Counted from the first letter of the stretch, positions 2-64,000 are shown. The stretch: DNA of 64,000 nucleotides from Carpediemonas membranifera BICM (GCA_019828565.1 JAHDYR010000025.1:930001-994000), one strand, 5' to 3'. Program-made: numbers and translations. Notes: generated from the sequence alone by a model not told the origin.

Positions 2-1309
2 CCGGTCGCCCTGCACACGCTGAACCAGGGCGCGGTGTGGGCGTGTCTGCTGGGTGGCGGGGCCAACCCAGACCTCGAGGACAGGGTGCTGAACGAGGCT
101 CGAGAGAAGTGGCCAGATGAGACCGATATGCATGACAAGATCCGCAAGGCTCTCACGCCCGAGGCCAAGTGCCTCTGGTTCCTCTGCCGCAAGTTCTTCT
201 TCACGCTGAACGTCGCCGAGAAGGACGGCGAGAGCTATCAGTACACAGTATACGGCGATTGCTACCACCACCGCATGTACATGGGCCGACTCTTCATGCT
301 CGACACTGACTATCACGCCGCCCTCACCAGGGCCAGGATGCCCAGGGCCCTCGAGGTCTACAGCGCCTGGTTCACCCTCATCGCCAGGACGCCCAAGGGT
401 CTGTGGGGCTGGGGCGCTTGCTACAATGGTGAGCTGGGGTTCCAGTCATCTGGGTTCGTCGACCCGACCCGCCTCACCTTCCCCGCCTGCCCCAAGGTCG
501 CCGAGCTCGAGGCCAGCCTGCCCGCTTGGGAGAAGCACAGGATGGTGACCGATTTGTCGATGGAGAGATGGCAGACGTTCATACTCACCCCGGTCGGCAC
601 TGTCATGGCTGGTGGCAGTTCAGAAAAGTTTGTCGACCCGGTCGAGCGGGAGAAAAACAAACACCTCTTCCACCCAGTCGCCGTGCCCGGTGGCTTTGTC
701 CCAGATCACATCATGCATGTGGGTCCGTTGCATGCAGTGACTGTTATCCTCTCCATGGGCGATCGGCAGGTGATCAGCGGTGACAATCAGTATGGCCGGC
801 TGGGACTCGGGCACGAGAACGAGATGACTGCCTTCGAGGAGCTGCCCTTCAGCGTGGATCTGATCATGCCCAGCCTTGCAAGAAACTGCAACGTCTTCCT
901 CGGTGACCGTCAACTGCACTTCGCCGGCCTGGCTCTCCTTCATGTCACCCACTCCGGCCTGCTGCCTGGGTACCGCGAGGGCAACCTATGCCTCACAGCC
1001 ACCCAGCTCCGGTTCCCAGAGCGTGTCAAGGGGTTCTTCTGTAATACATCTGCGCTCGCCTGGGTCACTGAGGGCCTCACTCATCTGTGCATAAGAGACA
1101 TCCGGATGTACTGTGTGCAATTTGAGGCGACGGCTTTTGGTCAGTCATTACCCGGTGTCCCAGGGGCTGATGTGTTGCGCGACTCCACTAGCCAGTGGTT
1201 CAGGGTGGCAAGAGTCACAAATCGGGTGGCTGAGATGGTCGAGTGCGAGGTCCCTTCTTCACAATGGGAGATCGCCCCAGTCGACGTCGACCCGTGGCCC
1301 GAGCAGTAA
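2..1309 (+). CDS. RCC1/BLIP-II-like variable family protein, copy 1 (5' end outside window)
   Basis: Open frame from the window edge to TAA 1307-1309. RCC1-like motifs WGWG-x5-LGF and G-x-N-x-YGRLGLG. Near-identical anchor blocks shared with ten other loci here. Confidence 0.8.
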   Translation, partial: PVALHTLNQGAVWACLLGGGANPDLEDRVLNEAREKWPDETDMHDKIRKALTPEAKCLWFLCRKFFFTLNVAEKDGESYQYTVYGDCYHHRMYMGRLFMLDTDYHAALTRARMPRALEVYSAWFTLIARTPKGLWGWGACYNGELGFQSSGFVDPTRLTFPACPKVAELEASLPAWEKHRMVTDLSMERWQTFILTPVGTVMAGGSSEKFVDPVEREKNKHLFHPVAVPGGFVPDHIMHVGPLHAVTVILSMGDRQVISGDNQYGRLGLGHENEMTAFEELPFSVDLIMPSLARNCNVFLGDRQLHFAGLALLHVTHSGLLPGYREGNLCLTATQLRFPERVKGFFCNTSALAWVTEGLTHLCIRDIRMYCVQFEATAFGQSLPGVPGADVLRDSTSQWFRVARVTNRVAEMVECEVPSSQWEIAPVDVDPWPEQ

Positions 1310-1589
1310 ATGATATAGTAGCTCCCCTGCCGTGCATCTCCCTTCTGCCGTGCTCGCATCTCAAGATAGTTGCACTTATTCCTGACAGGTCCAGATCATC
1401 AGATCCTTTGTGGACTGGGGGATCTTTACCCAGCAGTATGAAGAAGACGATCTCCCTACCGACTTAAGACGTGAGTAGGAGGGAGACAGGGCAGTGTTGC
1501 GCAGTATAAACACATTGTTTGACCCTTCAATAGCACACACTCGAGAGCTCTAAACTGCGTCCCTGCCACATTTAGCAGGCAAAGACAAA

Positions 1590-3238
1590 ATGGCCGAATT
1601 CGATTCGCGCATTGCTATTGAGCCTGCCAACTTGTTAGAAGGTGCTTCTAATAGTCAGAACCGAAACGTTGTCCGCGTTATTTCCGACCTTCATCTCGGA
1701 TCTCACTGTTTGTTCAATAACTGCCAGCAAAGTCTAATAGAGCTGATTTTGCTGACAAGTTCCAACGCGTATACTAACACAGGGCATACTAGCGAGAACT
1801 CCAAGGCCCTCTCCGTCTGTCTCGATGAATGCCTCGATCCTGCCACCTTTGTCAAAGCCCTTGTCGTCGGCGGTGATATCCTGGAGCAGTGGCTTGTACC
1901 GCACCACACGTCCCCGCCTAATGTTGTGGACGTTCTTCGCCAGACCAACGTCTTCCCAGTCATTGAGAAACTCCGAGCCGTCTCCAAGAACGGCGTGCAA
2001 GTCTACTACATCCGGGGCAACCACGACGACGAGCTCGACACCCCCTCCCTCCGCGAAGTGTTCGGCGACGATCTCATCATTGTCGAGGGAGAGGAGCTCT
2101 GCTTCAACGGCATGAGGTTCCAGCACGGCCACTACCAGGACCTCCTCAGCATGCCGTACGAGGGCGCCAAGTTCCAGAGGCCCGCTAGCTACTACATGAG
2201 CAGGCTGGCTGCGGCGAGCGGTAACATGCAGGACCGGCCCAATCCGGGTTGGCTCAACTTCTCGTGGCTCGCCGGGAACCGCTTCGTTTGTTTCATTTCG
2301 CTCAGATTCCATTTACATAGTTTACATACTTCCTCACACTCTTTTACTTTAAGCCTGTGACGAAATACTTTATGAGGATGACAATGACCATCTCGTATCA
2401 AAAGAAGTGGCACGAAATCAAGGATGAGCGCGTGCAGCTCAGAAACGGCAATTCCTTGTCCCTCTCAGAGATCGTCACCGAATATTCGGATCTGATCTGG
2501 TACGCGATGGAGAGATACGGTCCTGTCCGGACTGCCGCGATGTTCCGCATGAGCCTCTCCGGCAACGTCGGTCACTGGATGCGGCGCTCGCCCTACCTCA
2601 TCGAAGTCGCCGGCCACTCGCACATCCCCATGTTGAGGTCGTACATGCGGTACAAGAGCCTGCTGTCGGACGGGACCAAGGCGCCGCGGACCCTGCCGAC
2701 CAAGGTCATTTATGCCAACTCGGGTTCATTTACTGGGGGCGAGTCGACCTATGTAGACATCTTGCTCTCTCGCACGTCGCACGAGGTCGGCTGGCGGTCC
2801 TACCTCCCACCCTACCTCTTCGGCCTCGAGCACCCCCGCGACAACCGCTCCTACTACGAGAACTACAAGGGCGAACCCACCACTAATGTGCAGCCTCATA
2901 GTTGGGATCCCGCCGGCTCGATCAATGACCCTGCCCGGCTGACCCAGCAGGAGTCGGGTGTGGCAGCTGGCACGGTGGTCCCATACGAGGTCCGCATGGC
3001 CGAGTGGCGTGACGGAGGCTTCTACATCAGGAAGGCCAAGCGGGTGCCCTACCGGTTCGACCCCACCTCGTTTAACAGAAGAAAGCATGCTGTGAACAAG
3101 TATGACGTGCCCATCGAGTCTGGCTGGGTCACAGCTATGGGCGGGGCCCGGATGGGTGTGCCCGTCACAAGCGTGGACGCTGGGGACATGTGGGGCTGTG
3201 AGGCGTTGCAGACTAGTGACGTCGAGGATATGGTGTAG
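1590..3238 (+). CDS. Calcineurin-like metallophosphoesterase (LpxH-like motif set), two exons
   Basis: Motifs SDLHLG, GGD, RGNHD and HGH in ORF 1590-2360, and GHSH in ORF 2357-3238. The frames are joined by a short GT-AG intron. Confidence 0.8.
2286..2320 (+). other. Putative 35-nt spliceosomal intron
   Basis: GTTTGT...TTTACATAG, AT-rich. Removal joins the two metallophosphoesterase ORFs in frame (NRF|FTYF). An alternative acceptor at 2353 also keeps frame. Confidence 0.6.
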
Positions 3239-3520
3239 GGCTTTACATTTTTTTTTGAAGTTTTGTCTAAAAGTTTTGACCAAGAGAATGCGATGAGGGT
3301 ACGGACTTTGTGGGGTTGCCATGATATCCTTTGGCGGGTGTCCCAGGAAAGTGTCCGAGGCTGAGGCATATCGTCTGCCCACACAGGCGGGACACGTCGA
3401 CTTGTCTCTGGCCGGGACAGCGCGGCTTCCCTGCTGGCCATGAGGCCTGGGGCATGGGCACTGCGGGGCGCGTGTCCGACTGCAGCCGAGTTGCTTGGCA
3501 ACGAACGAACGACATGAGCA

Positions 3521-5805: not shown

Positions 5806-6690
5806 GGGCAGGCTGGCCTCGTGCTCGGCGACCTTGGGGCAGGCGGGGAAGGTGAGGCGGGTCGGGTCGACGAACCCAGATGACTTGAACCCCAGCTGAC
5901 CATATCCGCTATCACCCCAGCCCCACAGACCCTTGGGCGTCCTGGCGATGTGTGTGATCTCGTTGCTGTAGACCTCGAGGGCCCTGGGCATCCTGGCCCT
6001 GGTGAGGGCGGCGTGATAGTCAGTGTCGAGCATGAAGAGTCGGCCCATGTACATGAGGTGGTGGTAGCAATCGCCGTATACTGTGTACTGATAGCTCTCG
6101 CCGTCCTTCTCGGCGACGTTCAGCGTGAAGAAGAACTTGCGGCAGAGGAACCAGAGGCACTTGGCCTCGGGCGTGAGAGCCTTGCGGAGCTTGTCGTACA
6201 TCTCGGTCTCATCTGGCCACTTCTCTCGAGCCTCGTTCAGCACCCTGTCCTCGAGGTCGGGGTTGGCCCCGCCACCCAGCAGACACGCCCACACCGCGCC
6301 CTGGTTCAGCGTGTGCAGGGCGACCGGGAGCTCCTCGCCGTCCGCGAGCTCGACGTTCATGGACAGCGGAGGGCCGCTGGTGAGGATCGAGCGGGCGCGG
6401 TCGAGGAGGGCTTGCGCGGATGGTTCGAGAGGGTGGATCTCTGAGAGCGTGGCGAGGAGGGATTCGAGATCGTGGCCATCTTGCGGCGCGTCTGTGGTTG
6501 TATGATTGTGGATAAACGTCCTTAATGCGTTCAGCATGCCAGATCTGAGCGGGATTTCCTCATTGAAGTGACGCTGGTACGCGCAGGCGATGAGCGAGGG
6601 GATGTCGCCTGCGATGCTGCTCGTGGCCGTTATTGAGAGCCGATGGGCCGCGATCAGCGCCTCTCGCGTCTTTTTGTCTCCATTGCTCAT
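5806..6690 (-). pseudogene. RCC1-like family copy 3, 3'-truncated
   Basis: Starts MSNGDKKT at 6690. Family homology stops after EASLP at 5806, and the frame runs on into unrelated sequence to 5662. Confidence 0.8.
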
Positions 6691-13169: not shown

Positions 13170-13269
13170 TCGGAACTAAATATTCATACTCACCACCGGC
13201 CGAGACTGTCACGGCGGGCAACAAGGCAAGTTGGTTTAGAGGTTTTATCCTTGGGGTTGGAGACTCCAC

Positions 13270-13620
13270 TTCCACCCATCGTAGACGTGCCCACGGGCTT
13301 TGTCCCAGATTACATCCGGCATGTGGGTTCTTGCCAATCAGCGTCCGTCCTTCCCATGGGTAATCGAAAGATGATCTCTGAATGGAACAAGTGTGACTAC
13401 ATGGGATTCGGGCACGATAAAGATGTATCTTCACGCCGCCCGGAATTAGGATTCAGCGAAATATTAATAAGGTATTAATAAGATACAATGGCTTCTTCAT
13501 CAGCAGCCGCCCGCTGCTGTTCGCTGGTGAGGCTACACATCCTATCGCCGATTCGGGCTGAGATTGTGAAGTGCATGGCGTTAATATCGTACTGGGAGAT
13601 CGCCCAGTCGACGTCGGCTA
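13270..13620 (+). pseudogene. Highly decayed RCC1-like family remnant
   Basis: VDVPTGFVPDYIRHVG...VLPMGNRKMIS...GFGHDK, and nucleotides TGGGAGATCGCCCAGTCGACGTCG matching the family 3' end. Large deletions. Confidence 0.7.
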
Positions 13621-37667: not shown

Positions 37668-38085
37668 ATCCGAAAACGCTCTCACGCCCGAGGCCAAGTG
37701 CCTCTGGTTCCTCTGCCGCAAGTTCTTCTTCTCGCTGAACGTCGCCGAGAAGGACGGCGAGAGCTATCAGCGCCCTGTGCCCGACAGATGCTACCACCAC
37801 CTCATGTACATGGGCCGACTCTTCATGCTCGACACTGACTATCACGCCGCCCTCACCAGGGCCAGGATGCCCAGGGCCCTCGAGGTCTACAGCGACGAGA
37901 TCACACACATCGCCAGGACACCCAAGGGTCTGTGGGGCTGGGGTGATAACGGCTCTGGTCAGCTGGGGTTCGAGTCGTCTGGGTTCGTCGACCCGACCCG
38001 CCTCACCTTCCCCGCCTGCCCCAAGGTCGCCGAGCACGAGGCCAGCCTGCCCCCCTGGGAGAAGCACAGGATGGTGACTGATGTG
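37668..38085 (+). pseudogene. RCC1-like family copy 6, internal fragment truncated at both ends
   Basis: Homology begins at ATCCGAAAACGCTCTCACGCCC, 81 bp after the copy 5 stop, and ends after MVTDV. Confidence 0.8.
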
Positions 38086-40781: not shown

Positions 40782-40891
40782 ACTTGAAGTGAGTATAGAG
40801 CCCAAACGGCACTGAGAGGTACGATGAACGAACCAAATCTGCTTTCCTAAGGATGCACCTTGGTTGCAAAACAAGGGCCGGCTGACAGTAT

Positions 40892-43025: not shown

Positions 43026-44864
43026 TCAACTATCTATCGGATTGTGACTCCGACAACGGCGCAAAGGGCAGTCAGTCCGGACCATCCGTTGGTCTTGCTC
43101 ATAGACGTCGACCGGGGTGACCTCAGCAGTGCAAGGAGGCGGCCTACCACACTCGATCAGCTCTTTCCCATCCTTTTTCAGCCCGCGCCAGCGCCCGGCA
43201 CTGTCATGGATGTAAGAGGAGCAGGGTTCCCTGGAACCGATGCAGCGGTCATGCCAGGCCACTGCCGTAGTCACAATGTCAAGGCTGACTGGCACACGAT
43301 CGCTGTCGGTGACATGGGTCGCCCCATTGCTGATCCAGACAACCATACGCTCGTTAGAAAAGAAGCCCGAGACATGGGATGAGAACTGGAGCGGCGTGGC
43401 AGTGAGGCATTTCTCGCCCTGCTGGTATCCTGGAAGCAGGCCTGACTGGGCGATGTGCTCTGGGACCCAGCCGGAGAAAAGAAGCCGACTGTCAGCGAGG
43501 AAAATGTTCCAGCTGTTGCCGTGACCCAGCATCAGGTCGACCCCGAAGGGAAGCTCCTGGAACCCACACATCTCATCGTTGTGCCCGAGTCCCAACTGGC
43601 CATTCCAGTTGCGACCGCAAATCATCTGTCGATCGCCAGAAGACAGAATGACAGTTGAGCAAGCTGCCATCACATATTGTGGCACAAAGTGATCTGGAAC
43701 AATGACAAGGCGGAAGAGGCTGGCCGACTTCCCGACGGAGCCGACGAAATGCCAGGATTCATAGCCAGACATCACCACGCCGAGAGGGGTGAGGATGAAG
43801 GTGCCGCCGAAGCACAGCGACACACCGGTCACCACCCTGTGCTTCTCCCAGGGGGGCAGGCTGGCCTCGAGCTCGGCGACCTTGGGGCAGGCGGGGAAGG
43901 TGAGGCGGGTCGGGTCGACGAACCCAGATGACTTGAACCCCAGCTGGCCATATTCGTTGTAGCCCCAGCCCCACATGCCCTTGGGGGTCCTGGCGATGTG
44001 GGCGAGGTGACCATCAAACTCGTGGCTGTAGACCTCGAGGGCCCTGGGCATCCTGGCCCTGGTGAGGGTGGTGTGGTGCCTTGTGTCGAGCATGAAGAGT
44101 CGGCCCATGTACATGCGGTGATAATAGCTATTGTAATGCCCGGTATGTTGGTACTTCTCGCCGTCCTTCTCGGCGACGTTCAGCGAGAAGAAGAACTTGC
44201 GGCAGAGGAACCAGAGGCACTTGGCCTCGGGGGCGAGAGCCTTGCGGATCTTGTCGTGCATCGTGGTCTTGCCGGGCCACTTCATTCGAGCATCATCCAG
44301 CACCGTGTCCTCGAGGTCGGGGTTGGCCCCCGCCTCGACGAGCAGCGCCCAGATCGTACCCTGCAAAAGCGTGAAGATGCAGGGCGGGAGCTCCTCGCCG
44401 GGCGCCAGTGGGATGTCCATGCTCACACCGGGCCTCCCAGAAGAAAGGATGTTGACCGCTTCGGTACGCGTAACCTGACCAGTACAGGAGTGGTCCTCGG
44501 GCAGGTCCTCTCCGAACTCAAGAACGTTGGCCTCACGAACCATCTTTCCAGTGTTGCAAGGCATCTCTGCCTTCTGGGTGGGCAAGTTGGCATGTAGATG
44601 GAAAGTTTTGCCGCTTTCGATGCCTTCGGGGCTCGTAGGCTTCGTAACGCACATCGTCTCGAGACGTGAACGGATTTCGTCCAGTCTGGCTAACAAAGGC
44701 TTGATCTCCCAATCAGAAAGCTGTATACCACGTAACATATTAAGATTACGCCCAATGCCTTCGATGTGGGCATCCAGTTGCTCAAGTTCCTCTTGCCCTG
44801 CCATGAATGATGTGAGCAGGCAATCGACTTCCAACCGAGTCGCTTCTGGTGATGAGCTCGGCAA
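43026..44864 (-). CDS. RCC1-like family copy 8, divergent, with a different coiled-coil N-terminus
   Basis: 612-aa ORF. The central core is near-identical to the other copies while the flanks are diverged. Start uncertain (TTG or downstream Met). Confidence 0.75.
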   Translation of the reverse strand: MPSSSPEATRLEVDCLLTSFMAGQEELEQLDAHIEGIGRNLNMLRGIQLSDWEIKPLLARLDEIRSRLETMCVTKPTSPEGIESGKTFHLHANLPTQKAEMPCNTGKMVREANVLEFGEDLPEDHSCTGQVTRTEAVNILSSGRPGVSMDIPLAPGEELPPCIFTLLQGTIWALLVEAGANPDLEDTVLDDARMKWPGKTTMHDKIRKALAPEAKCLWFLCRKFFFSLNVAEKDGEKYQHTGHYNSYYHRMYMGRLFMLDTRHHTTLTRARMPRALEVYSHEFDGHLAHIARTPKGMWGWGYNEYGQLGFKSSGFVDPTRLTFPACPKVAELEASLPPWEKHRVVTGVSLCFGGTFILTPLGVVMSGYESWHFVGSVGKSASLFRLVIVPDHFVPQYVMAACSTVILSSGDRQMICGRNWNGQLGLGHNDEMCGFQELPFGVDLMLGHGNSWNIFLADSRLLFSGWVPEHIAQSGLLPGYQQGEKCLTATPLQFSSHVSGFFSNERMVVWISNGATHVTDSDRVPVSLDIVTTAVAWHDRCIGSREPCSSYIHDSAGRWRGLKKDGKELIECGRPPPCTAEVTPVDVYEQDQRMVRTDCPLRRCRSHNPIDS

Positions 44865-46140: not shown

Positions 46141-46458
46141 ATGGAATGGATGCTCCATAGAAATGATTAGGATGCCCGTCACTCTTTGTGCCAGATCATG
46201 TTGACACAACAGACCTCAGAGCTGTCGCCGCCATGTTCATTGCGTGGTGACGAGCATGTCTCGGCGCTGTCCATGGTCATGCCCCAGCCTCGCTGAGGGT
46301 GTTGCGGTGTCAAGAGCTAAACCCAGGATTAACTAGGGTTAAGGAATGGTTTTAGCTTGACCATCACCAGCATCTCATCGTCTGCTTCGCAGCTGGCGTC
46401 GGTGGTCGGCGAGTCGGCAGTCAGAATTTGGCCATCGCCGAACTGAGCGCTGAAAGCC

Positions 46459-48090
46459 ATGAGCAGCGCTAGTTCCTCGCCATCGGCCATCAAAGATGCG
46501 CTTATCTCCGTATTCCGCGCCTCGCTCGTTGTAACGGCCTCCATCTCCGGGGACATCCCCTCGTTGCTCCAGCACGCCTACTCCAGACACTTCGGCGAGC
46601 AGATGCCCTCGATCCACAACAACAAGAGCACTGTTACACCAACGAGCGTCCCTTCTCTCGAATCCCTCCTCGCCACGCTCTCCAAGATCCCCCCTCTCGA
46701 ACCAACCGCGCAAGCCCTCCTCGACCGCGCCCGCTCGATCCTCACCAGTGGCCCCCCGCTGTCCATGAACGTCGAGCTCGCGGACGGCGAGGAGCTCCCG
46801 GTCGCGATGCACACGCTGAACCAGGGCGCGGTGTGGGCTTGTCTCATGGGTGGTGGGGCCAACCCCGATCTAGAGGACAGGGTGCTGGAGGAGGCTCGGG
46901 AGAAGCAACCACATATGACCGATATTCATAACAGAATCCGCAAGGCTCTCACCCCCGAGGCCAAGTGCCTCTGGTTCCTCTGCCGCAAGTTCTTCTTCTC
47001 GCTGAACGTCGCCGAGAAGGACGGCAAGAGCTATCAGTGCAGCTGTAGTGGATACTACCACCACCACATGTACATGGGCCGACTCTTCATGCTCCGCACT
47101 GACTATCACGCCGCCCTCACCAGGGCCAGGATGCCCAGGGCCCTCGAGGTCTACAGCAACGAGATCACACACATCGCCAGGACACCCAAGGGTCTGTGGG
47201 GCTGGGGTGATAACGGCTCTGGTCAGCTGGGGTTCGAGTCGTCTGGGTTCGTCGACCCGACCCGCCTCACCTTCCCCGCCTGCCCCAAGGTCGCCGAGCA
47301 CGAGGCCAGCCTGCCCCCCTGGGAGAAGCACAGGGTGGTGACCGGTGTGTCGCTGATAAGAGCTCGAACGTTCATCTTCACTCCGGTCGGCACTGTCATG
47401 GCTGGTGCGGATGCGAAAGCGTTTGTCGGCACAGTCGAGGACGAGAACAGGCACCTCTTCCACCCAGTCGCCGTACCCACTGGCTTTGTCGCAGATCACA
47501 TCGTGGATTCATTCTACACTGTTATCCTGTCAATGGGCGATCGGCAGGTGATCGGCGGATGGAACGAGAATGGCCGGCTGGGACTCGGTCACGAGAACGA
47601 GATGACCGGCTTCGAGGAGCTGCCATTCAGGGTCGACCGGATCATAGCCTTTGAATTATTCTTCAACGTCTTCCTCAGCGGCCGCCAGCTGCTGTTCGCC
47701 GGCGAAGTTCCCCGTCCTATCGCCCAGTCGGGCCTGCTGCCTGGGTACAGTGAGGATGACAAGTGCCTCACAGCCACCCAGCTCCGGTTCCCAGAGAGAG
47801 TCAAGGGGTTCTGTTGCATGTTTTTGAGACTCCTCTGGGTCACTGAGGGCCGCACTCATCTGCGCAACCGTGACAAACAGTACTGTATGCCTTTTGAGGC
47901 GACGTCATTTGGCGGCAGAGTAATACGTGGCAGAGAAGTCTACTCATTACGTGACGCCGCCGGCCAGTGGTTTATGGAGAAGACATTGCCTGATGATATA
48001 GCTGGGGTAACTAGGCTGGTCAAGTGCAAAGTACCTACTTCACAATGGGAGATCATCCCAGTCGACGTCGACCCGTGGGCCGAGCAGTAA
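46459..48090 (+). CDS. RCC1-like family copy 9 (complete, 543 aa)
   Basis: Full ORF with all family anchors, ending PVDVDPWAEQ. Confidence 0.85.
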   Translation: MSSASSSPSAIKDALISVFRASLVVTASISGDIPSLLQHAYSRHFGEQMPSIHNNKSTVTPTSVPSLESLLATLSKIPPLEPTAQALLDRARSILTSGPPLSMNVELADGEELPVAMHTLNQGAVWACLMGGGANPDLEDRVLEEAREKQPHMTDIHNRIRKALTPEAKCLWFLCRKFFFSLNVAEKDGKSYQCSCSGYYHHHMYMGRLFMLRTDYHAALTRARMPRALEVYSNEITHIARTPKGLWGWGDNGSGQLGFESSGFVDPTRLTFPACPKVAEHEASLPPWEKHRVVTGVSLIRARTFIFTPVGTVMAGADAKAFVGTVEDENRHLFHPVAVPTGFVADHIVDSFYTVILSMGDRQVIGGWNENGRLGLGHENEMTGFEELPFRVDRIIAFELFFNVFLSGRQLLFAGEVPRPIAQSGLLPGYSEDDKCLTATQLRFPERVKGFCCMFLRLLWVTEGRTHLRNRDKQYCMPFEATSFGGRVIRGREVYSLRDAAGQWFMEKTLPDDIAGVTRLVKCKVPTSQWEIIPVDVDPWAEQ

Positions 48091-52751: not shown

Positions 52752-52802
52752 AATGAAAGGAATATTTTATATCTGCAAACTGCACAGACTAGCATACAAT
52801 CT

Positions 52803-55464: not shown

Positions 55465-56610
55465 TTATGTCCCATACGGGTCGATGTCGACGGGAATGAT
55501 GTCTTCCCACGACTCGGGCGTCTCGCACTCGACTGGCTCAGCCACCCCATCTGACCCACCCACCATTTCAAACCACTGGCCGGTGGAGTCGCGGAATGAG
55601 AGGACCCAGCTGCCGCTAACCCGTCTTCTACCAAGAGCGGTTGCCTCAAAGAGCACACAGTACTGTTTGTCACGGTTGCGCAGATGAGTGCGGCCCTCAG
55701 TGACCCAGGCGAGAGTCGTGTCATCAGACTGGAACCCCTTGACCTTCTCTCGGAACCGGAGCGGGGTGGCTGTGATGCAGAAGTCATCCTCACTGTACCC
55801 AGACAGCAGGCCCGACTGGGCGATAGGACGGGGAACTTCGCCGGCGAACAGCAGCTGGCGGCCGCTGAGGAAGACGTTGAAGAATAATTCAAAGGCTATG
55901 ATCCGGTCGACCCTGAATGGCAGCTCCTCGAAGCCGGTCATCTCGTTCTCGTGACCGAGTCCCAGCCGGCCATTCTCGTTCCATCCGCCGATCACCTGCC
56001 GATCGCCCATTGACAGGATAACAGTGTAGAATGAATCCACGATGTGATCTGCGACAAAGCCAGTGGGTACGGCGACTGGGTGGAAGAGGTGCCTGTTCTC
56101 GTCCTCGACTGTGCCGACAAACGCTTTCGCATCCGCACCAGCCATGACAGTGCCGACCGGAGTGAAGATGAACGTTCGAGCTCTTATCAGCGACACATCG
56201 GTCACCATCCTGTGCTTCTCCCAGGGGGGCAGGCTGGCCTCGTGCTCGGCGACCTTGGGCAGGCGGGGAAGGTGAGGCGGGTCGGGTCGACGAACCCAGA
56301 TGACTTGAACCCCAGCTGACCATATCCGCTATCACCCCAGCCCCACAGACCCTTGGGTGTCCTGGCGATGTGTGTGATCTCGTTGCTGTAGATCTCGAGG
56401 GCCCTGGGCATCCTGGCCCTGGTGAGGGCGGCGTGATAGTCAGTGTCGAGCATGAAGAGTCGGCCCATGTACATGAGGTGGTGGTAGCATCTGTCGGGCA
56501 CAGGGCGCTGATAGCTCTCGCCGTCCTTCTCGGCGACGTTCAGCGAGAAGAAGAACTTGCGGCAGAGGAACCAGAGGCACTTGGCCTCGGGCGTGAGAGC
56601 GTTTTCGGAT
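55465..56610 (-). pseudogene. RCC1-like family copy 10, 5'-truncated and frameshifted at 56257-56259
   Basis: Same 5' breakpoint as copy 6 and same G3-for-G4 deletion as copy 7. Confidence 0.8.
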
Positions 56611-56865
56611 GAGCAGCGGGGCCGACAAGCGGGCCAGCTTGAGCGAGTGATAAATGATTAAGAGACTTGGGGTGGGGTTGGCTGTCACTATTTATGAACC
56701 ATACGGGTCGATGTCGACGGGAATGATGTCTTCCCACGACTCGGGCGTCTCGCACTCGACTGGCTCAGCGCCAGCCTCGGATACCCTGAACAACTGGCCA
56801 GTAGCGTCGCGGAATGAGCTGAAGGCTTCATCTTCTTGAGTTGTGATACCAACTGCCATCGCCTC

Positions 56866-56967
56866 TGTTGGTTCATCAATAGATTATTTAATAGTCTTGA
56901 GTCGTCCAGCTCGACACATGGGTGTCGAGCTCTATTCTTTGTAAAGCTTTGTTCTCACGAACCCACA
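56866..56967 (+). repeat. 5' LTR (102 bp)
   Basis: TGTTGG...CCCACA. One mismatch to the 3' LTR. Internal perfect hairpin AGCTCGACAC-ATGG-GTGTCGAGCT at 56908-56931. Confidence 0.97.
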
Positions 56968-56982
56968 GTAACGTTACTTACA

Positions 56983-59900
56983 ATGACTGAGGACAAGGGT
57001 CCGTTATGTACTCAACCAGAGATTAATGCTCTGCTTTCGTTTAAGGAGAAACTCGATCGCCATGTCCGAACGGGCGGAAAACGCCGACTTATCAAGCGTT
57101 TGGGTCCGGCTGTCACCTCATACTGTGCAGCAGTTGGTGTAGACGTAGCCAAGACGTACAAGAGCGCGAAGCACAACACAGTGACGGGCGAGAAGCGTAA
57201 GAAACATGAGAGAGAGGACCTCGTTTTCAGAGCGATTGCTAACGCAATTAAGCCCACTGATCCGATCCTAGAGCGCCGTCTTTTCCAGCTAACGACCCAG
57301 GGTATTGACGTGGGACGTCTCTCACTCTATGCCGACAGATTCATCAGCCGCAAGGCCGTCTTGGCTCCCTCTTTCTCCGACGCCGTGATGCGCAGCATGT
57401 TCGTGAAGGGAATCCAGGACGAGGACCTCCGTAGGGAGGTCAAGGAGGCGGCTACAGGGCTTGACCTTAACAGCACCATCCAGGTCGCTCTCCAGACGTG
57501 CAAGCGTCTCCAAGAGGCTGCGATGATTACTTCCAGGACCATCAAGTCCGATTCTCAGCCTCGAAACCGCCCTCCTAAGGACCAGCGCGCAAGCCATTCT
57601 CGAGGTCTGCGCCGACAGGGCGGCCCGCCTCACCCGGGTGAGCACCAGTCTCATGGCAAGCACCAGTACCGGGGAGCCCAGTCTGAAATGCAGAGAAGTC
57701 AGCAGACCGGCTCAAGCACCGATCATCAGAGCACCAGCCGTACCATCGTGTGCTACAACTGCGGCAAGTCCGGTCACACATCGCGCCAGTGTCGGAACCC
57801 GAAGACTGTCTGCAGCAAGTGCGGTAAGCAGGGACATCAAGACAAGTTCTGTCGGGGTACTTCAGTAAACCCCCAGGCTTGTTCATCCTTTTCTCGTGCA
57901 CCCGCTCATGTCCTGACATCGTTGAGTCAGACACACAGCAACGCGCTCCCGATAGTAACAGCAGAGGTTCCGGTCGGTAATGATCACAGTGTGCAATGGG
58001 AGCGTGTACTTTTCGACTGCGGGGCGGATATTTGCTTGGTGAACCCCCAGTCGGCAACCGCTGCTGAACTTATTCCGACGAAGCTCAGTCAACCTATCGT
58101 CATCAAGACTCCAGGGGGATCTATTGAGTCCGACGTTTGCTATGAGATTCCCCTTCTCATGCATAAGTCACCTTTCACTCCAAAGGCACTGTCGACTACT
58201 GTCGCCGCATACGGAGTTGAATGCATCTACGACCTTCTATTGTCGTACCCAACGATGGTTGAGTGGGGCATCCTGCCCAGTGTCGCGGAATCTCAAGCGA
58301 GCCGGGACTCTGACGATATGGAACCGTCCGTCCCCCCAATGGACGCGATGCAGTCCTACACTATGTCAACAGATTTTACAGCGATGCATGCGCGAATCAT
58401 CGCCAAGTTCAGCCGTTGCTTCGAGGAGCGTGAGGGGTTTTCTGCCTTAGAGCCTTATGACCTGATCTTGAAGGAGGACCGAGTAGTAGCGTCCAGGTCA
58501 AATTACATCCCCTCACCAGAAGCAGGGTCTGTTTGATGAGCACGTCCGGGAGCTGTTAGCCAAGAAGTATATTGAGGCGAGTTTCTCTCCGTACTCGTCC
58601 CCAGCTCTCCTCGTCCCGAAGGGCCGAGACAGAACTCGTATGGTTGTCGATTTCAGAAGGATCAACGACCTGACTGAGCCGTTTGATTACCCGATCCCAG
58701 AGGTTCAAGCGTGCCTCGCACGGTTGGCAGGAGCTAAGATCTTCGCCACGATTGACCTTTCGAAGGGTTATCATCAAGTCAAGTTGTCCGAAAGGTCGAG
58801 ACAATACACTGCGTTCCAGACCCCACGAGGCAAGTTCCAGTATACGGGCATGCCGTTTGGATTGAAAAACGCTGGGGCGCATTTCCAGTTTGCAATTGAA
58901 CGGGGATTCCACGATCTACTTGGTACCGCGTGTATCATATATATTGACGACATTATAATTTTCGGCCGCACAGAGCAAGAGTACTTGTCCAACTTGAACA
59001 AGGTGTTGGCGAGGGCCGAAGAGTTGAAACTCAGCCTCAACAAGGAGAAGTCACACTTTGGACTCGCAGAAGTCGAGTTCTTAGGCTGGGTGGTGTCGGG
59101 TACAGGATTTAGAATGGCGCCAGACCGCATTCGGGATGTTGAGACGCTGCGTGTCCCGAAGACGAAGAAGGCCGCTCAAGCCCTAATGGGATTCTTGAAC
59201 TTCATGAGAGATTTTTGTGCCAGGTTTTTCGAGGATCGTGCACCCTTTAGCTCAAGCCGCGTGTGGCAAGGCACCTCCCGACGGCAGCGATCAGGTCGAG
59301 GCTTTGGCGCAGGTCAAAGATCTGCTGTGTCAGGCTCCCGCCCTCGAACACTTCGATGTTACCCGTGAGCACGTCGTCATGACTGACGCGTCAGACCTTG
59401 GAATTGGCGGAGTGTTGCTACAAGACGGTAAGCCGGTGTCATACATGTCCAAGTCTTTCAACGATGTGCAGACGAGATGGAGCACAATTGAACAGGAGGC
59501 GTATGCAATCGTTTCCGCGTTGCAGAGGTGGCGCAGGTTCTTGTGTTGGACACCATTCACATTGCTGACTGATCATCGCAATCTTGTGTTTATGTCGCGT
59601 TCTTCCAACTCCAAGGTTCAACGGTGGTACGAATCAATATCTGATCTTGATTTCACGATCAAACATGTGGCCGGAGTGGATAACAGTGCAGCCGATGGTC
59701 TCAGTCGCGTGTTTGCGGCATCGGCAGATCGGTTGCCAGTGGCGTCTGAGACGGAGATAGCTGAGGCACACAGACACGGGCAAGCTCACCTGCCACTGCA
59801 TACCACGATACAATTCTTGAGGACACATGGCAAGAGGGCGCCCGTGGATCAGGTGGCGAGGGTGATCGACAGATGTCCGGTATGTCAACTCACAGCAAAA

Positions 59901-60987
59901 CCAGCTGAAGCCGCCAGGGCATACTTACATACAGCCGGACTCAGGCCGTTCATGAAGGTAGCAATGGACACTATCGGTCCGTTGCCCGAGTCGCTCGGAT
60001 ACAAGTTCATTTTTAGTAGTAGTCGATATGGCTTCGAGGTGGACCGAGCTCATTCCGCTGAAGACAACGAGAGCCGACGAAGCTGTCAGAGCATTTGCTG
60101 ACCAGTGGATACTCAGGTATGGAGTCCCTCGAGTCCTCCAAACAGACGGAGGCAAGCAGTTTGTCAACAAGCTGTTCAAGGACTTGTCCGTCCGAGTTGG
60201 CTTTTCAATCCATACAACCACTCCATATCATCCACAGTCAAATGGAGTGGTCGAACGAGCGAACAGCAGAGTCGAGCGTATTCTGAGGGCGCGGCAGTAC
60301 GAGCTGAGGTCGGAGCTGTGGTCGGAGTCGTTGCCAGTCGCACAGTACATTGTCAACGCGACACCACACTCAGCAACGCGTTTAACCCCAGCAGAGGTGA
60401 TTTTTGGTAGTGATCTGCGCGTACCGGCCGACATGCTAATCGTCAAAGAACTGGGTGAGAAGGCGGTCAGCCAACCAGCGAGCAACGTAGCTGCTGCCAA
60501 ACTCGCTCGAGAGCTCGCTGAAGCACGTATTAAGGCAATGCACGCTGACGCTCTCAGCAAGCTGCCCCCTCCTGAACCAATTACGTCTGAGTTTGTATTG
60601 GTCAAATACCCGAATGGGCCACCATCAAAGTTGGCTGCAGGGTGGCGAGGCCCCATGCAACTGATCCAGCCTATCATGAGGAATGACTTTCCTGTTGGTT
60701 ACTGGGTTAGAGATGTCAATACGAGGACCGAATTCCAGGTCGCGTCCGAGAGGGTCAGACCATTTTCAGGCGAGCTGTCCATGCAACATGCCCAAGAGCT
60801 AGCAGCAGTGACGATCGGCGAGTATGTCGTGGAGTCGATATACGAAGCAACGCATGAGCGCAGACTCAGCGATCGGCAGTTCCACGTCCGATGGGCAGGG
60901 TACGAGCCTTCGGAAGATACGTGGGAGCCGTACCAGAACGTTAAGGGATGCGAAGCGTTGGATATATATCTGGGGAAGGCCGAATAA
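56983..60987 (+). CDS. gag-pol: Gag-Pol polyprotein (three +1 frameshifts in homopolymers as assembled)
   Basis: Two CCHC knuckles; protease LFDCGAD; RT YIDD; RNase H TDASD/EQEA/TDH; integrase HHCC plus D,D,E (MDT, TDGG, VER); GPY/F-like WRGP; chromodomain YVVESI...VRWAGYEPSEDTWEP. Shifts at 58509-58512, 59212-59216 and 60010-60014. Confidence 0.93.
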
Positions 60988-61012
60988 ATGGCCCCCAAGC
61001 ATCAGAAACTGT

Positions 61013-62134
61013 TTATTCGCAAGTGTCACAACGGACGTTACCATCGAGGGCAACGTCGTCGGCGAGGTAAGACTCGTAAGACAGATGCTCAGTGAGGAAC
61101 TGGGCAACGGCAGGGTGAGTCTGCATGCGCCGAGTAGCGATGGCAATGCTGCTCACATTGGGGCATTCCTCATAACTGACATGCAGGCGCAGAAGACCAG
61201 GGGCGTCAAAACGATAATGCCAAACACGCGAGACCGTGAAGGCTGCAGAAGTCATGTCTTGCAGAGTCAGCGACGGGGCGCGGTCAGCAGTAACCGGCAT
61301 GAAGCCTGACAGAAGACTGAACTCTGCGTCGTCGAAGGAAGCGCCGCTACGCATGCGAGCGAAGTACTGACGAGCGAACTCAGCGCAATCAGCGCGGGTG
61401 AGGATACCGAGGGCCTCTCCCATGTGCAGCACAAAATATAGGTTGACATCGTGGCCGAGCATGACAGCACGGAAGACATGAGGACGCATGGTGACGATGC
61501 TGAGGCCAGAGCGATTCTCGATCTCTTGCTTGAGCGCGTTCGGCACATACGCGCGTTTGTCTCGAACAGCAGTGAGGTAGGCTGAAACGATGGCAGCATC
61601 AGTCGAATCGCGACGTATGGAGAGGTAAGCCGACATCGCCTGGAGTACGATAGCGTCACGGCAGAGATCAGCGCCGGCGTCATGCGAGTGCACTGCAGCG
61701 GAAGCGCGGGTGTAAGAGTGCAGCCGGTTGTCGGTGAGCAGCAGTAACTCAGTCCGGGGAGAGTTCCAGTAGTAGCTGACTGCCTGCCGGGTGACGAGTT
61801 CCACGTAGCCAGAGAGGGATGGCGGGGTGTCGTCCGACTCGGAGTCAGACTCATTGTCGGTTGGGTCAGGAGAAGCCGGAAGGTAGCGTAGGTCGACGGC
61901 GTTAACGCTCTCGCTGTCAGATGCAGAACTGGTTACGGCGCCAGCAAGTTCCTCTGGGACATTAGGGACGTTTTGGCGCCTAGGAGCACGTCGCGGCTGG
62001 TAAGGGGTGAACAGCTCGAGGTAGGAACCAGTTTCAGAGATATGGCGACGGAGGAGACGGCAAAATTGCATTCTCGAAGTGTTAGTCGTAAGACGATTTA
62101 GAATAGTTTCCACAGCGGCGTCGAAATCCCCCAT
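61013..62134 (-). CDS. Antisense accessory ORF inside the retrotransposon (373 aa, unknown function)
   Basis: ATG-initiated uninterrupted ORF, not overlapping pol, convergent with it across 25 bp, and preceded by an AT-rich region. No TM or signal peptide apparent. Confidence 0.75.
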   Translation of the reverse strand: MGDFDAAVETILNRLTTNTSRMQFCRLLRRHISETGSYLELFTPYQPRRAPRRQNVPNVPEELAGAVTSSASDSESVNAVDLRYLPASPDPTDNESDSESDDTPPSLSGYVELVTRQAVSYYWNSPRTELLLLTDNRLHSYTRASAAVHSHDAGADLCRDAIVLQAMSAYLSIRRDSTDAAIVSAYLTAVRDKRAYVPNALKQEIENRSGLSIVTMRPHVFRAVMLGHDVNLYFVLHMGEALGILTRADCAEFARQYFARMRSGASFDDAEFSLLSGFMPVTADRAPSLTLQDMTSAAFTVSRVWHYRFDAPGLLRLHVSYEECPNVSSIAIATRRMQTHPAVAQFLTEHLSYESYLADDVALDGNVRCDTCE

Positions 62135-62891
62135 GAGCTGTGATCGTCTAGAAAGTCGACTTTCCAGAAAGCAAAAAATGCGAAATCGATGAAACGCAAT
62201 GGTTACGCAACAATGCTGTTCAGAAGTGGAACATAGAGTTGTTTACATGGTGGAACTGATGTTGTTATTCAATATAGCCGCGTTTTCGGGATCCAAAAAG
62301 TGTTTCCGGCGGTGCAAAAACGAAAAAGTGCCATATCTCGCGAACGAGAAGGAATTGGAGCCTCTTAACCCGTTTTTTTGAACGCCGTGTAAGATTAGGC
62401 GGAATGTAACCAACCTCTGGTAAGAATTGACATGGGGACATCGATGGCACCTAAAAGTGCGCCATTTGACCCTTTCAGAATCGTCGGGTATGTTTCAAAG
62501 ACTTTCAAGAGGGGCAGGACCCCAGGTAAGGATACCCATAACATAGCGCGCTAATACAGTGGTACCACGCAAGATTTGATCAGATAATATTAGGTAATTT
62601 AGATTTGGTAGTGAGGTAAGCATATCTCAGAAACGTGACTGGACATCACGCCGGGCATAAGACACAGGGTTTTTATAGCCAGTCTGGTCAACGGGTATCC
62701 GGTGAACTCGAAAGTCCCGAGCTCACAACGGTTCAGGCAATAGGGCTTAGTCCATTGCCAACTCCGGCTCCATGGCGAGTCCCCATGGAAGCGACGGTTA
62801 CTGGAGCTTGTATCTGGGCAATTCACCCGGACCAAGCACCTAGCACACCCTTCATAATAGTGTTGAGTTTTTTGATGCTCTACCGGAGCAT

Positions 62892-62901
62892 GGGAGGGAA
62901 G
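62892..62901 (+). other. Polypurine tract
   Basis: GGGAGGGAAG directly abutting the 3' LTR. Confidence 0.9.
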
Positions 62902-63003
62902 TGTTGGTTCATCAATAGATTACTTAATAGTCTTGAGTCGTCCAGCTCGACACATGGGTGTCGAGCTCTATTCTTTGTAAAGCTTTGTTCTCACGAACCC
63001 ACA
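62902..63003 (+). repeat. 3' LTR (102 bp)
   Basis: 101/102 identical to 56866-56967. Confidence 0.97.
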
Positions 63004-63403
63004 CCTCAAAAGGCACGCTGTACTGGTTTTCTCCGTCGCATAGATGAGTGCGGCCCTCAGTGACCCAGATAAGATCATAGTCACAAAAGAATCCCTTGAC
63101 TCTCTCTGGGAACCGGAGTTGGGTGGCTGTGAGGCACTTGTCGCCCTCGCTGTACCCAGGCAGCAGGCCCGACTGGGCGATAGGACGGGGAACTTCGCCG
63201 GCGAACAGCAGCTGGCGGTCGCAGAGGAAGACGTTAAAATCATCTTCAGGAGTCATGATCCGGTCGACCCTGAATGGCAAGTCGACGAATCCAGACATAT
63301 CATTCTCATGACCAAGTCCCAGCTGGCCTTTCCAGCTTTCTCCGCTGATCACCTGCCGATCGCCCATGGAGAGGATGACAGTCACTGCATGCAACGGACC
63401 CAC

Positions 63404-63527
63404 TGTGGTCTGTCAAGACTTAGAAGAACTTTTAGTAAAAGCAAAGAAGAGAGGGTTTGACCCTGCTGTGGTAAATATGGCAATAATAAATATATCAACT
63501 ATGTAAACAATGGGTAGGACCCTGACA
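63404..63527. mobile_element. Solo LTR (124 bp) of a second retrotransposon family
   Basis: AT-rich insert TGT...ACA flanked by a CCAC duplication (63400-63403 / 63528-63531). The empty site is visible in copy 1 at ~711-735. Confidence 0.85.
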
Positions 63528-64000
63528 CCACATGCATGATGTGATCTGGGACAAAGCCACCGGGCACGGCGACTGGGTGGAAGAGGTGTTTGTTTTTCTC
63601 CCGCTCGACCGGGTCGACAAACTTTTCTGAACTGCCACCAGCCATGACAGTGCCGACTGGGGTGAGTATGAACGTCTGCCATCTCTCCATCGACACATCG
63701 GTCACCATCCTGTGCTTCTCCCAGGGGGGCAGGCTGGCCTCGTGCTCGGCGACCTTGGGGCAGTTGGGGAAGGTGAGGCGGGTCGGGTCGACGAACCCAG
63801 ATGACTTGAACCCCAGCTGACCATATCCGCTATCACCCCAGCCCCACAGACCCTTGGGTGTCCTGGCGATGTGTGTGATCTCGTTGCTGTAGACCTCGAG
63901 GGCCCTGGGCATCCTGGCCCTGGTGAGGGCGGCGTGATAGTCAGTGTCGAGCATGAAGAGTCGGCCCATGTACATGAGGTGGTGGTAGCAATCGCCGTAT

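Follow-up and report, generated by a model that had tools for sequence, protein, structure and literature searches.

Exchange between paralogues and selection on one propeller face in an RCC1-like gene family of Carpediemonas membranifera, a candidate intracellular recognition repertoire

The window analysed here, a stretch of 64,000 nucleotides from Carpediemonas membranifera (contig JAHDYR010000025.1:930,001-994,000), holds repeated copies of one gene in which conserved anchors alternate with variable cassettes, and raises the question of how such a pattern arises and what it may serve. The copies are part of a ~200-member protein family, seen in C. membranifera only and making up ~2.5% of its predicted proteome (about 200 of 8,300), with an orphan helical N-terminal domain and a seven-bladed RCC1-like propeller. 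Full-text searches found no description of this family in the literature. The host is a eukaryote noted for its lack of ORC and Cdc6. The reading that we prefer, with a probability of about 0.68, is evolution of the kind seen in Type I R genes, on a new scaffold and in a new lineage, yielding a putative recognition repertoire on one face of the propeller. All results refer to a single assembly of a single strain.

The 11 copies or fragments reported by the initial annotation were all found at their places, all intronless; the decayed fragment listed below and a C-terminal family piece that sits on a 1834-aa kinase ORF had been missed.

2..1309, + strand: copy 1, its 5' part beyond the window edge; full 548-aa ORF in L005
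3521..5170, + strand: copy 2, intact 549-aa ORF; alternative N-terminal type, common to copy 3
5806..6690, - strand: copy 3, 3'-truncated past about residue 286 (blade 2)
13183..13558, + strand: decayed family fragment, blades 4-5, with stops and frameshifts
22790..24410, - strand: copy 4, full length, 2-nt deletion near 23070
35973..37586, + strand: copy 5, intact 537-aa ORF
37675..38085, + strand: copy 6, following copy 5 in tandem; internal piece spanning about residues 162-297
40892..42501, - strand: copy 7, full length, 1-nt deletion near 41675
43026..44654, - strand: copy 8, a divergent member (DNA identity about 74%) with a non-homologous N-terminus
46459..48090, + strand: copy 9, intact 543-aa ORF
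55465..56603, - strand: copy 10, its 5' truncation point identical to that of copy 6; 1-nt deletion near 56259, in common with copy 7
56692..56865, - strand: copy 11, 3' end, on the far side of the retrotransposon
56866..63003, strand not assigned: Ty3/Gypsy-type LTR retrotransposon in copy 11, ~6.1 kb, 102-bp LTRs, 4-bp target duplication GAGG
63004..63402, - strand: middle piece of copy 11, blades 4-6
63403..63527, strand not assigned: ~124-nt TG...CA insert inside copy 11, 4-bp target duplication GTGG, solo-LTR-like
63528..64000, - strand: 5' piece of copy 11, cut by the window edge

Copy 11 is broken by two insertions, the ~124-nt insert and the 6.1-kb Gypsy element, and the block 56194-56865 matches the junction of copies 5 and 6 at 98.7% identity; the origin of the truncated copies was traced to LTR insertion and segmental duplication of the tandem pair. 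Each of the examined intact copies carries an identical-type conserved upstream element of ~70 nt, likely a promoter or 5' UTR. Outside the family, a kinase-like ORF pair in the window shares a duplicated tract of 564 nt, 100% identical, and another unrelated ORF has an internal duplicated tract of 192 nt, also 100% identical.

The structure model and all residue numbers refer to copy 9:

46380..46458, + strand: conserved upstream element (~70-80 nt), shared with copies that have an intact 5' end
46459..47022, + strand: orphan N-terminal helical domain, residues 1-188
47026..48069, + strand: seven-bladed RCC1-like propeller, residues 190-537

The AF2 model of copy 9 has a pLDDT of 88, and its top 50 Foldseek matches, at E 1e-11 to 1e-6, are all propellers of the RCC1-like or a related type, those to WBSCR16, UVR8, RPGR and the HERC RLDs having E values of 1e-11 to 1e-8. 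Pfam PF25390/PF00415 are matched at E 1e-8 to 4e-3, mostly below the curated cut-off, and the family profile matches HERC1, RPGR and UVR8 at E 6e-7 to 1e-4. The predicted fold and the repeat signature agree in placing the family in the RCC1-like superfamily, as first proposed. The N-terminal domain gave no match to a known effector or adaptor domain, and neither Pfam nor structure comparison found a STAND NTPase (NB-ARC or NACHT) with an N-terminal effector domain. Residues 115-188 look F-box-like by eye only, the pattern being suggestive in divergent members; searches by Pfam, PDB profile, hhalign and Foldseek detected no F-box, their power being limited by the short length and by an insertion of 2-43 residues that interrupts the motif. 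For a link to an F-box/SCF-type ubiquitin ligase, this visual resemblance is the only lead. In seven members no hydrophobic signal or membrane segment was seen (maximum 19-residue hydropathy 1.15-1.47), and hence the proteins are probably cytosolic, as the initial annotation had supposed.

On copy 9, the cassettes and the sites identified below as positively selected are located as follows:

47041..47055, + strand: blade 1 A-B turn cassette (after SYQ), site S197
47158..47169, + strand: blade 2 A-B turn cassette (after VYS), site I236
47209..47223, + strand: blade 2 C-D loop cassette (after WGWG), sites D251, S254
47356..47421, + strand: blade 3 A-B and early C-D cassettes, sites R301, A302, A321
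47506..47574, + strand: blade 4 A-B and early C-D cassettes, with the GWNENGR/ESWKGQ site; sites S351, F352, Y353, E370, N371
47650..47718, + strand: blade 5 A-B and early C-D cassettes, with the EVPRP/RVTPH site; sites F398, L400, F401, E416, R419
47812..47877, + strand: blade 6 A-B and C-D cassettes, sites C452, L456, R457, R471

In the structure model, a single face holds all the cassettes, which correspond to the A-B turns and the early C-D loops, the variable residues being neither scattered nor buried. Diversity is 0.72 in these loops vs 0.24 in the B-C and D-A loops (p = 1e-16); the loops of the opposite face are strongly conserved despite equal exposure, and Tyr, Asp, Asn and Cys are over-represented on the variable face. 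The cassette alleles listed in the initial annotation are correct, but its counts were low: at least 12 variable sites rather than at least eight cassettes, and, instead of a few discrete alleles, 5-8 per site in 16 contig-25 copies and 10-15 in 21 young proteins. Since the cassettes align with the GWRH turn and the WGxGxxGQ loop of UVR8, the variable face may be the one used by UVR8, RCC1 and BLIP-II, a correspondence that we assume from sequence alignment rather than from coordinate superposition. RCC1-like propellers are known to hold partners on one face, e.g., in HERC2 (PMC13748646), and the RCC1-like propeller BLIP-II binds its partner on one face as well (10.1101/2024.08.26.609822).

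The copies are mosaics. Two anchors had been described as near-identical down to the codons; those of EAKCLWFLCRKFFF are identical in all ten covering copies, the divergent copy 8 included, whereas SSGFVDPTRLTFP is near-identical overall, with codons varying at a few positions. In copy 8, the anchors at residues ~160-296 are homogenised with the young copies. All four combinations of the blade 4 and blade 5 alleles occur, as originally noticed: ESWKGQ with RVTPH (copies 4, 5) and with EVPRP (copy 11), GWNENGR with RVTPH (copy 7) and with EVPRP (copies 9, 10); copy 11 changes from the copy-1 type to the copy-4/5 type within the VILSMGDRQVISG anchor. Chance is excluded as the source of the mosaics by a PHI-like permutation test, p = 0.0005 in three subsets, which is the floor for 2000 permutations. 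Painting of 25 copies gave a mosaic divergence of 2.8% vs 7.6% from the best single donor, compared with 6.3-6.4% vs 7.5-7.7% in simulations without recombination. Partners switch along the copies in identical tracts of 90-421 nt, and 97.6% of the painted bases come from the same contig, as do 131 out of 143 near-identical protein windows, which form three separate pools. The claim of recombination or conversion between paralogues is thus borne out by the test, the painting, linkage decay and base composition (see below). Exchange cassette by cassette, as had been suggested, is not supported, since the painted tracts (median about 107 nt, longest 421 nt) often cover several cassettes with their anchors and only 23% of them are shorter than 60 nt; nor is independent assortment of adjacent cassettes, which are linked (allele sharing 0.51 vs a baseline of 0.26, reached again at a distance of 4-8 sites).

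Such exchange might be programmed, silent or truncated donors being copied directionally into expressed copies at an elevated rate in clonal growth. It is very dense (about 5 recent segments per kb, many tracts being 100% identical), 23% of tracts are shorter than 60 nt, and intact copies share perfect tracts with broken ones (394 nt between copies 9 and 10, 421 nt between copies 5 and 4), all of which would suit a programmed system. However, many intact copies have their own upstream element and no single expression site is apparent; the truncated copies, once proposed as donors, are accounted for by LTR insertions and tandem-pair duplication; and identical frameshifts recur in otherwise different mosaics, as undirected exchange predicts (the 1-nt deletion of copy 7 in copy 10 and one L002 copy; another in four contig-67 copies). 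Read from one genome, these shared frameshifts suggest an undirected flow of exchange with which lesions spread. Neither a shared recombination motif or inverted repeat nor an adjacent recombinase or reverse transcriptase module was seen, a base-specific spectrum is lacking, and the genome has been called haploid from allele frequencies (PMC8516963). On present evidence, the family is not a programmed diversification system, and we regard this explanation as improbable. A diversity-generating retroelement or deaminase-type hypermutation was rejected, as the per-site frequency of singleton changes (A 0.096, C 0.112, G 0.113, T 0.051) shows an ordinary transition bias instead of a base-specific spectrum, and no template repeat paired with a reverse transcriptase was found, the one RT-like ORF noted in the window being part of a Gypsy element.

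The mosaics might also be created by the assembly (R9.4 nanopore, ABruijn/Nanopolish/Pilon), as consensus or Illumina-polishing chimeras among similar paralogues: tract lengths overlap with the sizes of Illumina reads and inserts, and some of the frameshifts fall in homopolymer or dinucleotide runs. Yet Pilon made 3,483 substitutions genome-wide, against about 1,270 excess sites explained by switching in 25 copies; mis-mapped reads would not respect the confinement of exchange to contigs; and the 1.6 kb genes have unique flanks and 83x long-read cover. Moreover, GC3 of the anchors is 0.86-0.92 vs 0.68 in neighbouring genes (background range 0.61-0.78), and that of the face is 0.46-0.55 in young exchanging copies; this difference between anchor and face is not seen in old isolated copies, and GC3 falls with divergence (rho = -0.85). 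The GC3-rich homogenised anchors are a footprint of gene conversion, though high GC3 could partly be codon preference, and therefore count against an artefact, as the GC3 gradient and the omega pattern require long evolutionary time. Individual mosaic junctions could be wrong; an artefact as the general explanation is very improbable.

Selection favours change on one propeller face. The NG86 estimate of omega reaches 1.01 for the face, compared with 0.42 for the framework, and dS is 0.51 vs 0.21. Site models (M2a vs M1a, 2dL = 109) place 12.5% of sites at omega 3.8, a value that residual recombination and loop misalignment can inflate, locally inferred trees having been used; all 22 sites with posterior > 0.9 lie on the variable face (omega about 3-4), in agreement with the non-synonymous excess anticipated by the initial annotation. 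The signal was kept in two controls, with face-only codons (2dL 29.6, omega 2.7) and with a deeper-genealogy null (2dL 24.4, omega 2.8). The pattern might still be a neutral by-product of a recombination-prone genome, one that has neither NHEJ nor ORC and for which HR-dependent replication is proposed, that homogenises any young paralogues, with loops merely unconstrained, and mean omega over the whole face of only about 1, the many broken family copies, and the 100% identical tracts in unrelated window genes (564 nt, 192 nt) are compatible with this. Omega > 1 outlasting both controls, the conservation of equally exposed opposite-face loops and the bias of the face towards Tyr, Asp, Asn, and Cys argue otherwise, and function over the long term is implied by the size of the family (~200 members), its conserved N-terminal domain and a framework omega of about 0.4; we therefore consider neutrality unlikely, about as much so as programming.

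Family copies are scattered singly among housekeeping genes in both orientations, with local clustering; being intronless and having an upstream element in common, they resemble the cargo of a selfish mobile element whose own interest the diversity would serve, e.g., as an anti-silencing or decoy protein. Against this, terminal inverted repeats, target duplications, poly-A tails and a common 3' boundary are absent from the inspected flanks, viral and metagenome contigs gave no relatives, and the old dispersed members are stably retained, so that this origin is highly improbable. These old members (best partner 39-60% identical, near-identical windows almost nil) are slow, non-exchanging and Type II-like, and live alongside the exchanging young clusters in one genome.

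Undirected conversion between paralogues combined with diversifying selection is very probably the evolutionary mechanism; we infer conversion rather than reciprocal crossover. Local duplication would build the clusters, within which ordinary homologous recombination, i.e., ectopic gene conversion plus some unequal exchange, would copy sequence from one paralogue to the matching position of another in tracts of about 60-420 nt, heteroduplex presumably being seeded in the near-identical framework. Exchange would keep the framework homogenised and GC-rich and re-combine old divergent loop alleles, and point mutation under diversifying selection would renew the face-forming A-B and C-D loops, the outcome being a standing germ-line repertoire in which the scaffold is constant and the binding surfaces vary. 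The host has no NHEJ, and Dmc1-dependent homologous recombination has been proposed as its mainstay (PMC8516963).

As patch swapping and one-face selection are found in plant and fungal immune-receptor genes, the family is a candidate intracellular recognition repertoire; a role in defence or recognition is slightly favoured. The variable face may bind proteins, the putative targets being fast-changing foreign ones (of viruses, transposons, intracellular bacteria or their effectors), and the conserved N-terminal domain may couple to a host effector. It is doubtful that conversion well above the genome background, perhaps fed by recombination-dependent replication, keeps making new faces of variable receptors in clonal populations, with the constant N-terminal adaptor, possibly a split F-box, leading viral or bacterial proteins to ubiquitin-dependent destruction. 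Little is known about the recognition of intracellular enemies by free-living protists, and we found no comparable intracellular repertoire described in the host lineage. With the preferred reading of undirected exchange and selection, the family is a concrete candidate for innate recognition in Metamonada, a natural library of putatively binding propeller faces, and a read-out of ectopic recombination in the host, which bears on its proposed recombination-dependent replication.

Segmental gene conversion underlies antigenic variation in Anaplasma msp2, Borrelia vlsE, Neisseria pilE/pilS and trypanosome mosaic VSG, as well as chicken Ig conversion. Like these systems, the family alternates variable segments with conserved anchors and recombines them through conversion tracts; unlike them, it has no apparent single expression site, promoterless donor array or sign of directionality. 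Judging from the upstream elements and the origins of truncations, an expression site with a silent donor archive is probably absent, and the product does not appear to be surface-exposed. Thus, of the binding repertoire generated by segmental conversion that was initially envisaged, mosaic exchange and the single face stand, but the antigenic-variation analogy is weak, because intact copies have their own upstream elements, truncations are explained, and frameshifts are shared.

Rapidly evolving adaptor expansions are known for F-box/BTB proteins, e.g., nematode F-box families and F-box-RCC1 proteins. Similar to them are the constant N-terminal helical module, the variable, positively selected C-terminal putative binding domain, the hundreds of lineage-specific copies and the F-box-like residues seen by eye; the difference is that formal tests detect no F-box and the motif is split. 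With RCC1, UVR8, RPGR, HERC RLDs, WBSCR16, and BLIP-II the family shares seven blades and the GxxH / WGxNxxGQLG repeat pattern, but it is very divergent (12-16% identity), and the binding face is conserved in known RCC1-like proteins, its presumed counterpart here being hypervariable.

The fungal HNWD NLRs (Podospora het-d and het-e, with WD40 sensors) also have an intracellular beta-propeller with hypervariable selected positions on one surface, reshuffled by recombination, their repeats being 80-100% identical within a gene and shuffled between repeat positions (PMC12222747). Blades within a gene of our family, in contrast, share no detectable DNA similarity (copy 9 has no off-diagonal self-match except two 12-nt palindromes), exchange is position-matched between genes, NACHT and HET domains are lacking, and the propeller is RCC1-type, not WD40; without STAND NTPase and internal repeat conservation, the family does not belong to the NLR/HNWD group.

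The closest parallel is with Type I R-gene clusters, i.e., lettuce RGC2 (the Type I/II model, Kuang et al.), Solanum R2 homologues and Arabidopsis RPP8, where paralogues are likewise patchworks of >99% identical tracts with frequent within-cluster exchange, and fast chimeric members occur beside slow isolated ones (PMC4619397; PMC6771003). Diversifying selection on a solvent-exposed binding surface, here a putative one, is common to both. The family differs from R genes in having an RCC1-like propeller and an orphan N-terminal domain instead of NB-ARC or LRR, and its host is a free-living unicellular metamonad, where a defence role is a candidate only. The family bears every evolutionary hallmark of immune-receptor clusters in plants and fungi, but on an RCC1 scaffold and with an orphan N-terminal domain.

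All eleven copies or fragments of the RCC1-like family reported for the window in the initial annotation were found where described. Alignment confirmed the listed anchors (near-identical stretches) and the alleles of the cassettes (the short variable segments between them), and the example of two linked sites with all four allele combinations is correct as written. Beyond the eleven, there is a decayed fragment at 13183–13558 and a C-terminal family piece ending a 1834-aa kinase ORF. Copies 2, 5, and 9 are intact, as is copy 1 once read past the window edge. A single frameshift disrupts each of the full-length copies 4 and 7; copies 3, 6, and 10 have been truncated, and copy 8 stands apart as divergent. 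A Gypsy element of 6.1 kb (102-bp LTRs; GAGG target duplication) splits copy 11, whose 3′ end lies at 56865–56692. Copy 11 also carries a smaller insert, of which a search of the window and further loci found no second copy. The junction of copies 5 and 6 is duplicated as the copy 11/10 tandem (98.7% identity). Local alignments alone used N to bridge frameshifts and took copy 11 as three pieces in order, with the inserts removed; no joined model was used in any search. Annotated fusions of family members with RhoGEF, ThiF, VPS37, prenyltransferase, WD40, and other domains vary from case to case and probably reflect merged gene models; in the single instance examined, the ORF of the family stands separate.

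Features neighboring or interrupting the family copies
13735–18825, minus strand: 1696-aa ORF, internal repeats of 192 nt (100% identity) and 79 nt (97%), no match in Pfam
25127–30631, plus strand: one 1834-aa ORF comprising a weakly Ras-like N-terminus, kinase domain, IBR zinc finger, and the family piece (E 2e-8)
30859–35199, minus strand: 1446-aa kinase-like/RhoGEF ORF carrying a 564-nt tract
38319–40955, minus strand: 878-aa protein of a different RCC1 family, with canonical RCC1 repeats, inside the cluster
45127–46140, plus strand: 2-hydroxyacid dehydrogenase gene
56866–63003: young Ty3/Gypsy-type LTR retrotransposon, unusually short LTRs at 99% identity
63403–63527: insert of ~124 nt in copy 11, TG...CA ends, 4-bp target duplication GTGG, solo-LTR-like

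The 1834-aa ORF, which by eye also contains a HECT-N-lobe-like stretch, resembles a kinase/ubiquitin-ligase-like chimera. It shares with the adjoining 1446-aa ORF an inverted, 100% identical tract of 564 nt (28898–29461 vs. 31747–32310), a recent domain-level exchange outside the family. The 878-aa protein likely has a C-terminal membrane segment. In the Gypsy element, a gag zinc knuckle, protease, RT/RNase H, integrase, and chromodomain-like region were recognized by inspection, and an additional 373-aa ORF (61013–62134) lies on the strand opposite gag-pol. The dehydrogenase gene adjoins a family copy a second time on the same contig (8399–9436 of locus L005), with no DNA-level match between the two genes. 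Very large FG-GAP/ephrin-receptor-like repeat proteins (up to 5154 aa) adjoin family copies at loci L007, L008, and L010, on three contigs; they are possibly another expanded surface family and, possibly, a good control for exchange rates.

Residues are numbered here by copy 9 (46459–48090, plus strand), which maps to contig JAHDYR010000025.1 (contig 25; 1,024,508 bp) and thereby places the window at 930,001–994,000 of that contig. Its AlphaFold2 model (pLDDT 88) comprises a helical domain (residues 1–188) and a seven-bladed propeller (190–537); Foldseek ranks WBSCR16, UVR8, RPGR, HERC RLDs, and RCC1 highest, and the family profile matches HERC1, RPGR, and UVR8. No hydrophobic segment was found in any member tested. 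The N-terminal domain has no match in Pfam, PDB folds, or viral folds, and the only PDB sequence matches, short ankyrin-like GADP ones and one EF-hand protein (E 0.002), were judged to be chance. By eye, residues 115–188 look like a split F-box, which we take as a lead only: Pfam and PDB sequence searches found no F-box, and hhalign gave a negative result against a single F-box-RCC1 protein. This region was searched as separate pieces, an insertion-free joined profile being omitted as having no reference. Residues 141–160 (46879–46938) interrupt the part of the N-terminus that is otherwise best conserved; this variable segment ranges from 2 to 43 residues among family members (omega ~0.6).

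Mosaicism was assessed by painting 25 copies, namely the window copies and 15 from flanking contig 25 loci and from contig 67, another family cluster, with the divergent copy 8 set aside. Pairs of copies share identical tracts of 90–421 nt and then change partner, e.g., copies 4/5 at residues 293–433, copies 9/10 at 297–429, and copies 5/7 at 150–274 and again at 410–483. Rebuilding a copy from the others leaves a mean divergence of 2.8% vs. 7.6% from the best single relative, compared with 6.3–6.4% and 7.5–7.7%, respectively, in simulations on the same tree without recombination. The recombination claimed initially is thus upheld, also by a PHI-like permutation test (p = 0.0005, the permutation floor). 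Exchange stays within contigs: 97.6% of painted bases have a same-contig origin, 131 of 143 near-identical protein windows are shared within one contig, and the protein comparison resolves at least three distinct pools of exchange (contigs of 1,024,508, 905,863, and 496,590 bp). Beyond these pools, a long tail of dispersed old members has hardly taken part in recent exchange.

Other details of the initial annotation need revision. Neighboring cassettes, held to assort independently, are linked (sharing 0.51 vs. a baseline of 0.26), the linkage vanishing 4–8 sites apart, and the supposedly few alleles number 5–8 per site in 16 contig 25 copies. The median internal tract is 107 nt long (interquartile range 64–256; 23% below 60 nt), an ordinary size for gene conversion. 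Given these lengths and the linkage, the exchange unit is a tract of gene-conversion size, not the cassette.

Could the mosaics be assembly artefacts? ABruijn produced the assembly, followed by Nanopolish and eight rounds of Pilon; Pilon made 3,483 substitutions genome-wide, whereas partner switching accounts for ~1,270 sites over the simulated expectation in just 25 copies. That exchange keeps to single contigs also speaks against an artefact. In young exchanging copies, GC3 is 0.86–0.92 in the anchors (residues 98–300) and 0.46–0.55 on the variable face, the propeller side bearing the cassettes, with 0.68 (range 0.61–0.78) in 22 neighboring genes; the anchor/face contrast is absent from old isolated copies. 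Along the gene, GC3 is inversely related to divergence (rho −0.85), reaching 0.98–0.99 in the most homogenized windows. From established knowledge, this is the trace that long-running GC-biased conversion would be expected to leave, and, being beyond what polishing can make, it argues against an artefact. We conclude that the feature is real, while single junctions and frameshifts may yet differ in raw reads.

The shared frameshifts are, pending raw reads, probably real as well. One 1-nt deletion is common to copies 7 and 10 and one copy of L002, another contig 25 locus, and another lesion to four contig 67 copies, in mosaics otherwise different. Nanopore errors are a less likely source: the stretches of identity flanking the deletion are not longer than those in unaffected copies, and linked substitutions accompany the contig 67 lesion.

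The proposal that the cassettes make up a binding surface fits the model. With strands taken from copy 9, they are predicted to form the A–B turns and the start of each C–D loop, all on one side of the propeller; diversity is 0.72 in these loops vs. 0.24 in the opposite-side B–C and D–A loops (p = 1e-16). Blade-2 cassettes align to two UVR8 elements, the GWRH turn and the WGxGxxGQ loop. Judging from sequence alignment rather than superposed coordinates, we take this to be probably the face by which known RCC1-like propellers bind partners. One-face binding has been described for HERC2 RLD2 (PMC13748646) and BLIP-II (10.1101/2024.08.26.609822).

The face has a pairwise omega of 1.01 (dS 0.51), the framework 0.42 (dS 0.21), and the conserved portion of the N-terminus 0.35 (dS 0.10). 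Site models were fitted with our own codon-likelihood code to half-blade segments, each with its own FastTree tree. They point to excess non-synonymous change on the face: M2a is preferred over M1a (2dL = 109; omega 3.8 at 12.5% of sites). The preference remains when only face codons are analyzed (2dL 29.6, omega 2.7) and when the null permits deeper neutral genealogies (2dL 24.4, omega 2.8); any remaining recombination, like the loop alignment, may push these values up. The 22 sites whose posterior exceeds 0.9 all fall within or border the A–B or early C–D loops.

The truncated copies had been suggested as donors, but nothing indicates an archive or an expression site. Every copy with an intact 5′ end has the same ~70-nt upstream element, and the truncations have mundane causes (LTR insertion, duplication of a tandem pair). 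Lesions recur in different mosaics, the way damage would spread if exchange had no direction. The mutation spectrum is ordinary, with no DGR or deaminase spectrum seen in the family copies, and no mobile-element borders were seen in the flanks inspected. Subtelomeric placement is not claimed: the contig 25 end is LINE-like (by inspection, endonuclease sequence at 1–1500 of L002) with no telomeric repeat, and the contig 67 cluster is internal. A dedicated variable-receptor system is improbable in our estimation. Genes of the window that lie outside the family share perfect tracts too, so ectopic exchange may be a general tendency of this genome. The best-supported explanation is duplication, undirected conversion, and diversifying selection: local duplication builds the clusters, undirected inter-paralogue conversion acts within them, and selection works on one putative binding face, giving the germ line many alternative surfaces carried by one unchanging scaffold.

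C. membranifera is a free-living, apparently haploid fornicate (24.2-Mb genome, 8,300 predicted proteins) without ORC, Cdc6, or NHEJ, in which Dmc1-dependent homologous recombination has been proposed to drive replication (PMC8516963). The family is known in collections from its single assembly; no second source was found in the protein collection at short length, cluster members, metagenome contigs, or viral contigs. The 120 best listed homologues of copy 5 belong to C. membranifera wherever named, and the N-terminal domain, present in 212 retrieved proteins (fragments counted), is found only there, as are all its bearers with source checked. Full-text searches found no description of the family.

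From the evolutionary signature alone, we infer a role in recognizing fast-evolving foreign proteins. Of the features of antigenic-variation systems, the family shows no sign of an expression site with a donor archive or of a surface-exposed product. It evolves like Type I plant R-gene clusters (PMC4619397; PMC6771003) and like fungal HNWD propellers (PMC12222747); it has neither a STAND NTPase nor internal repeat identity, and thus belongs to neither class, the novelty residing in the RCC1-like scaffold, the orphan N-terminal domain, and the lineage.
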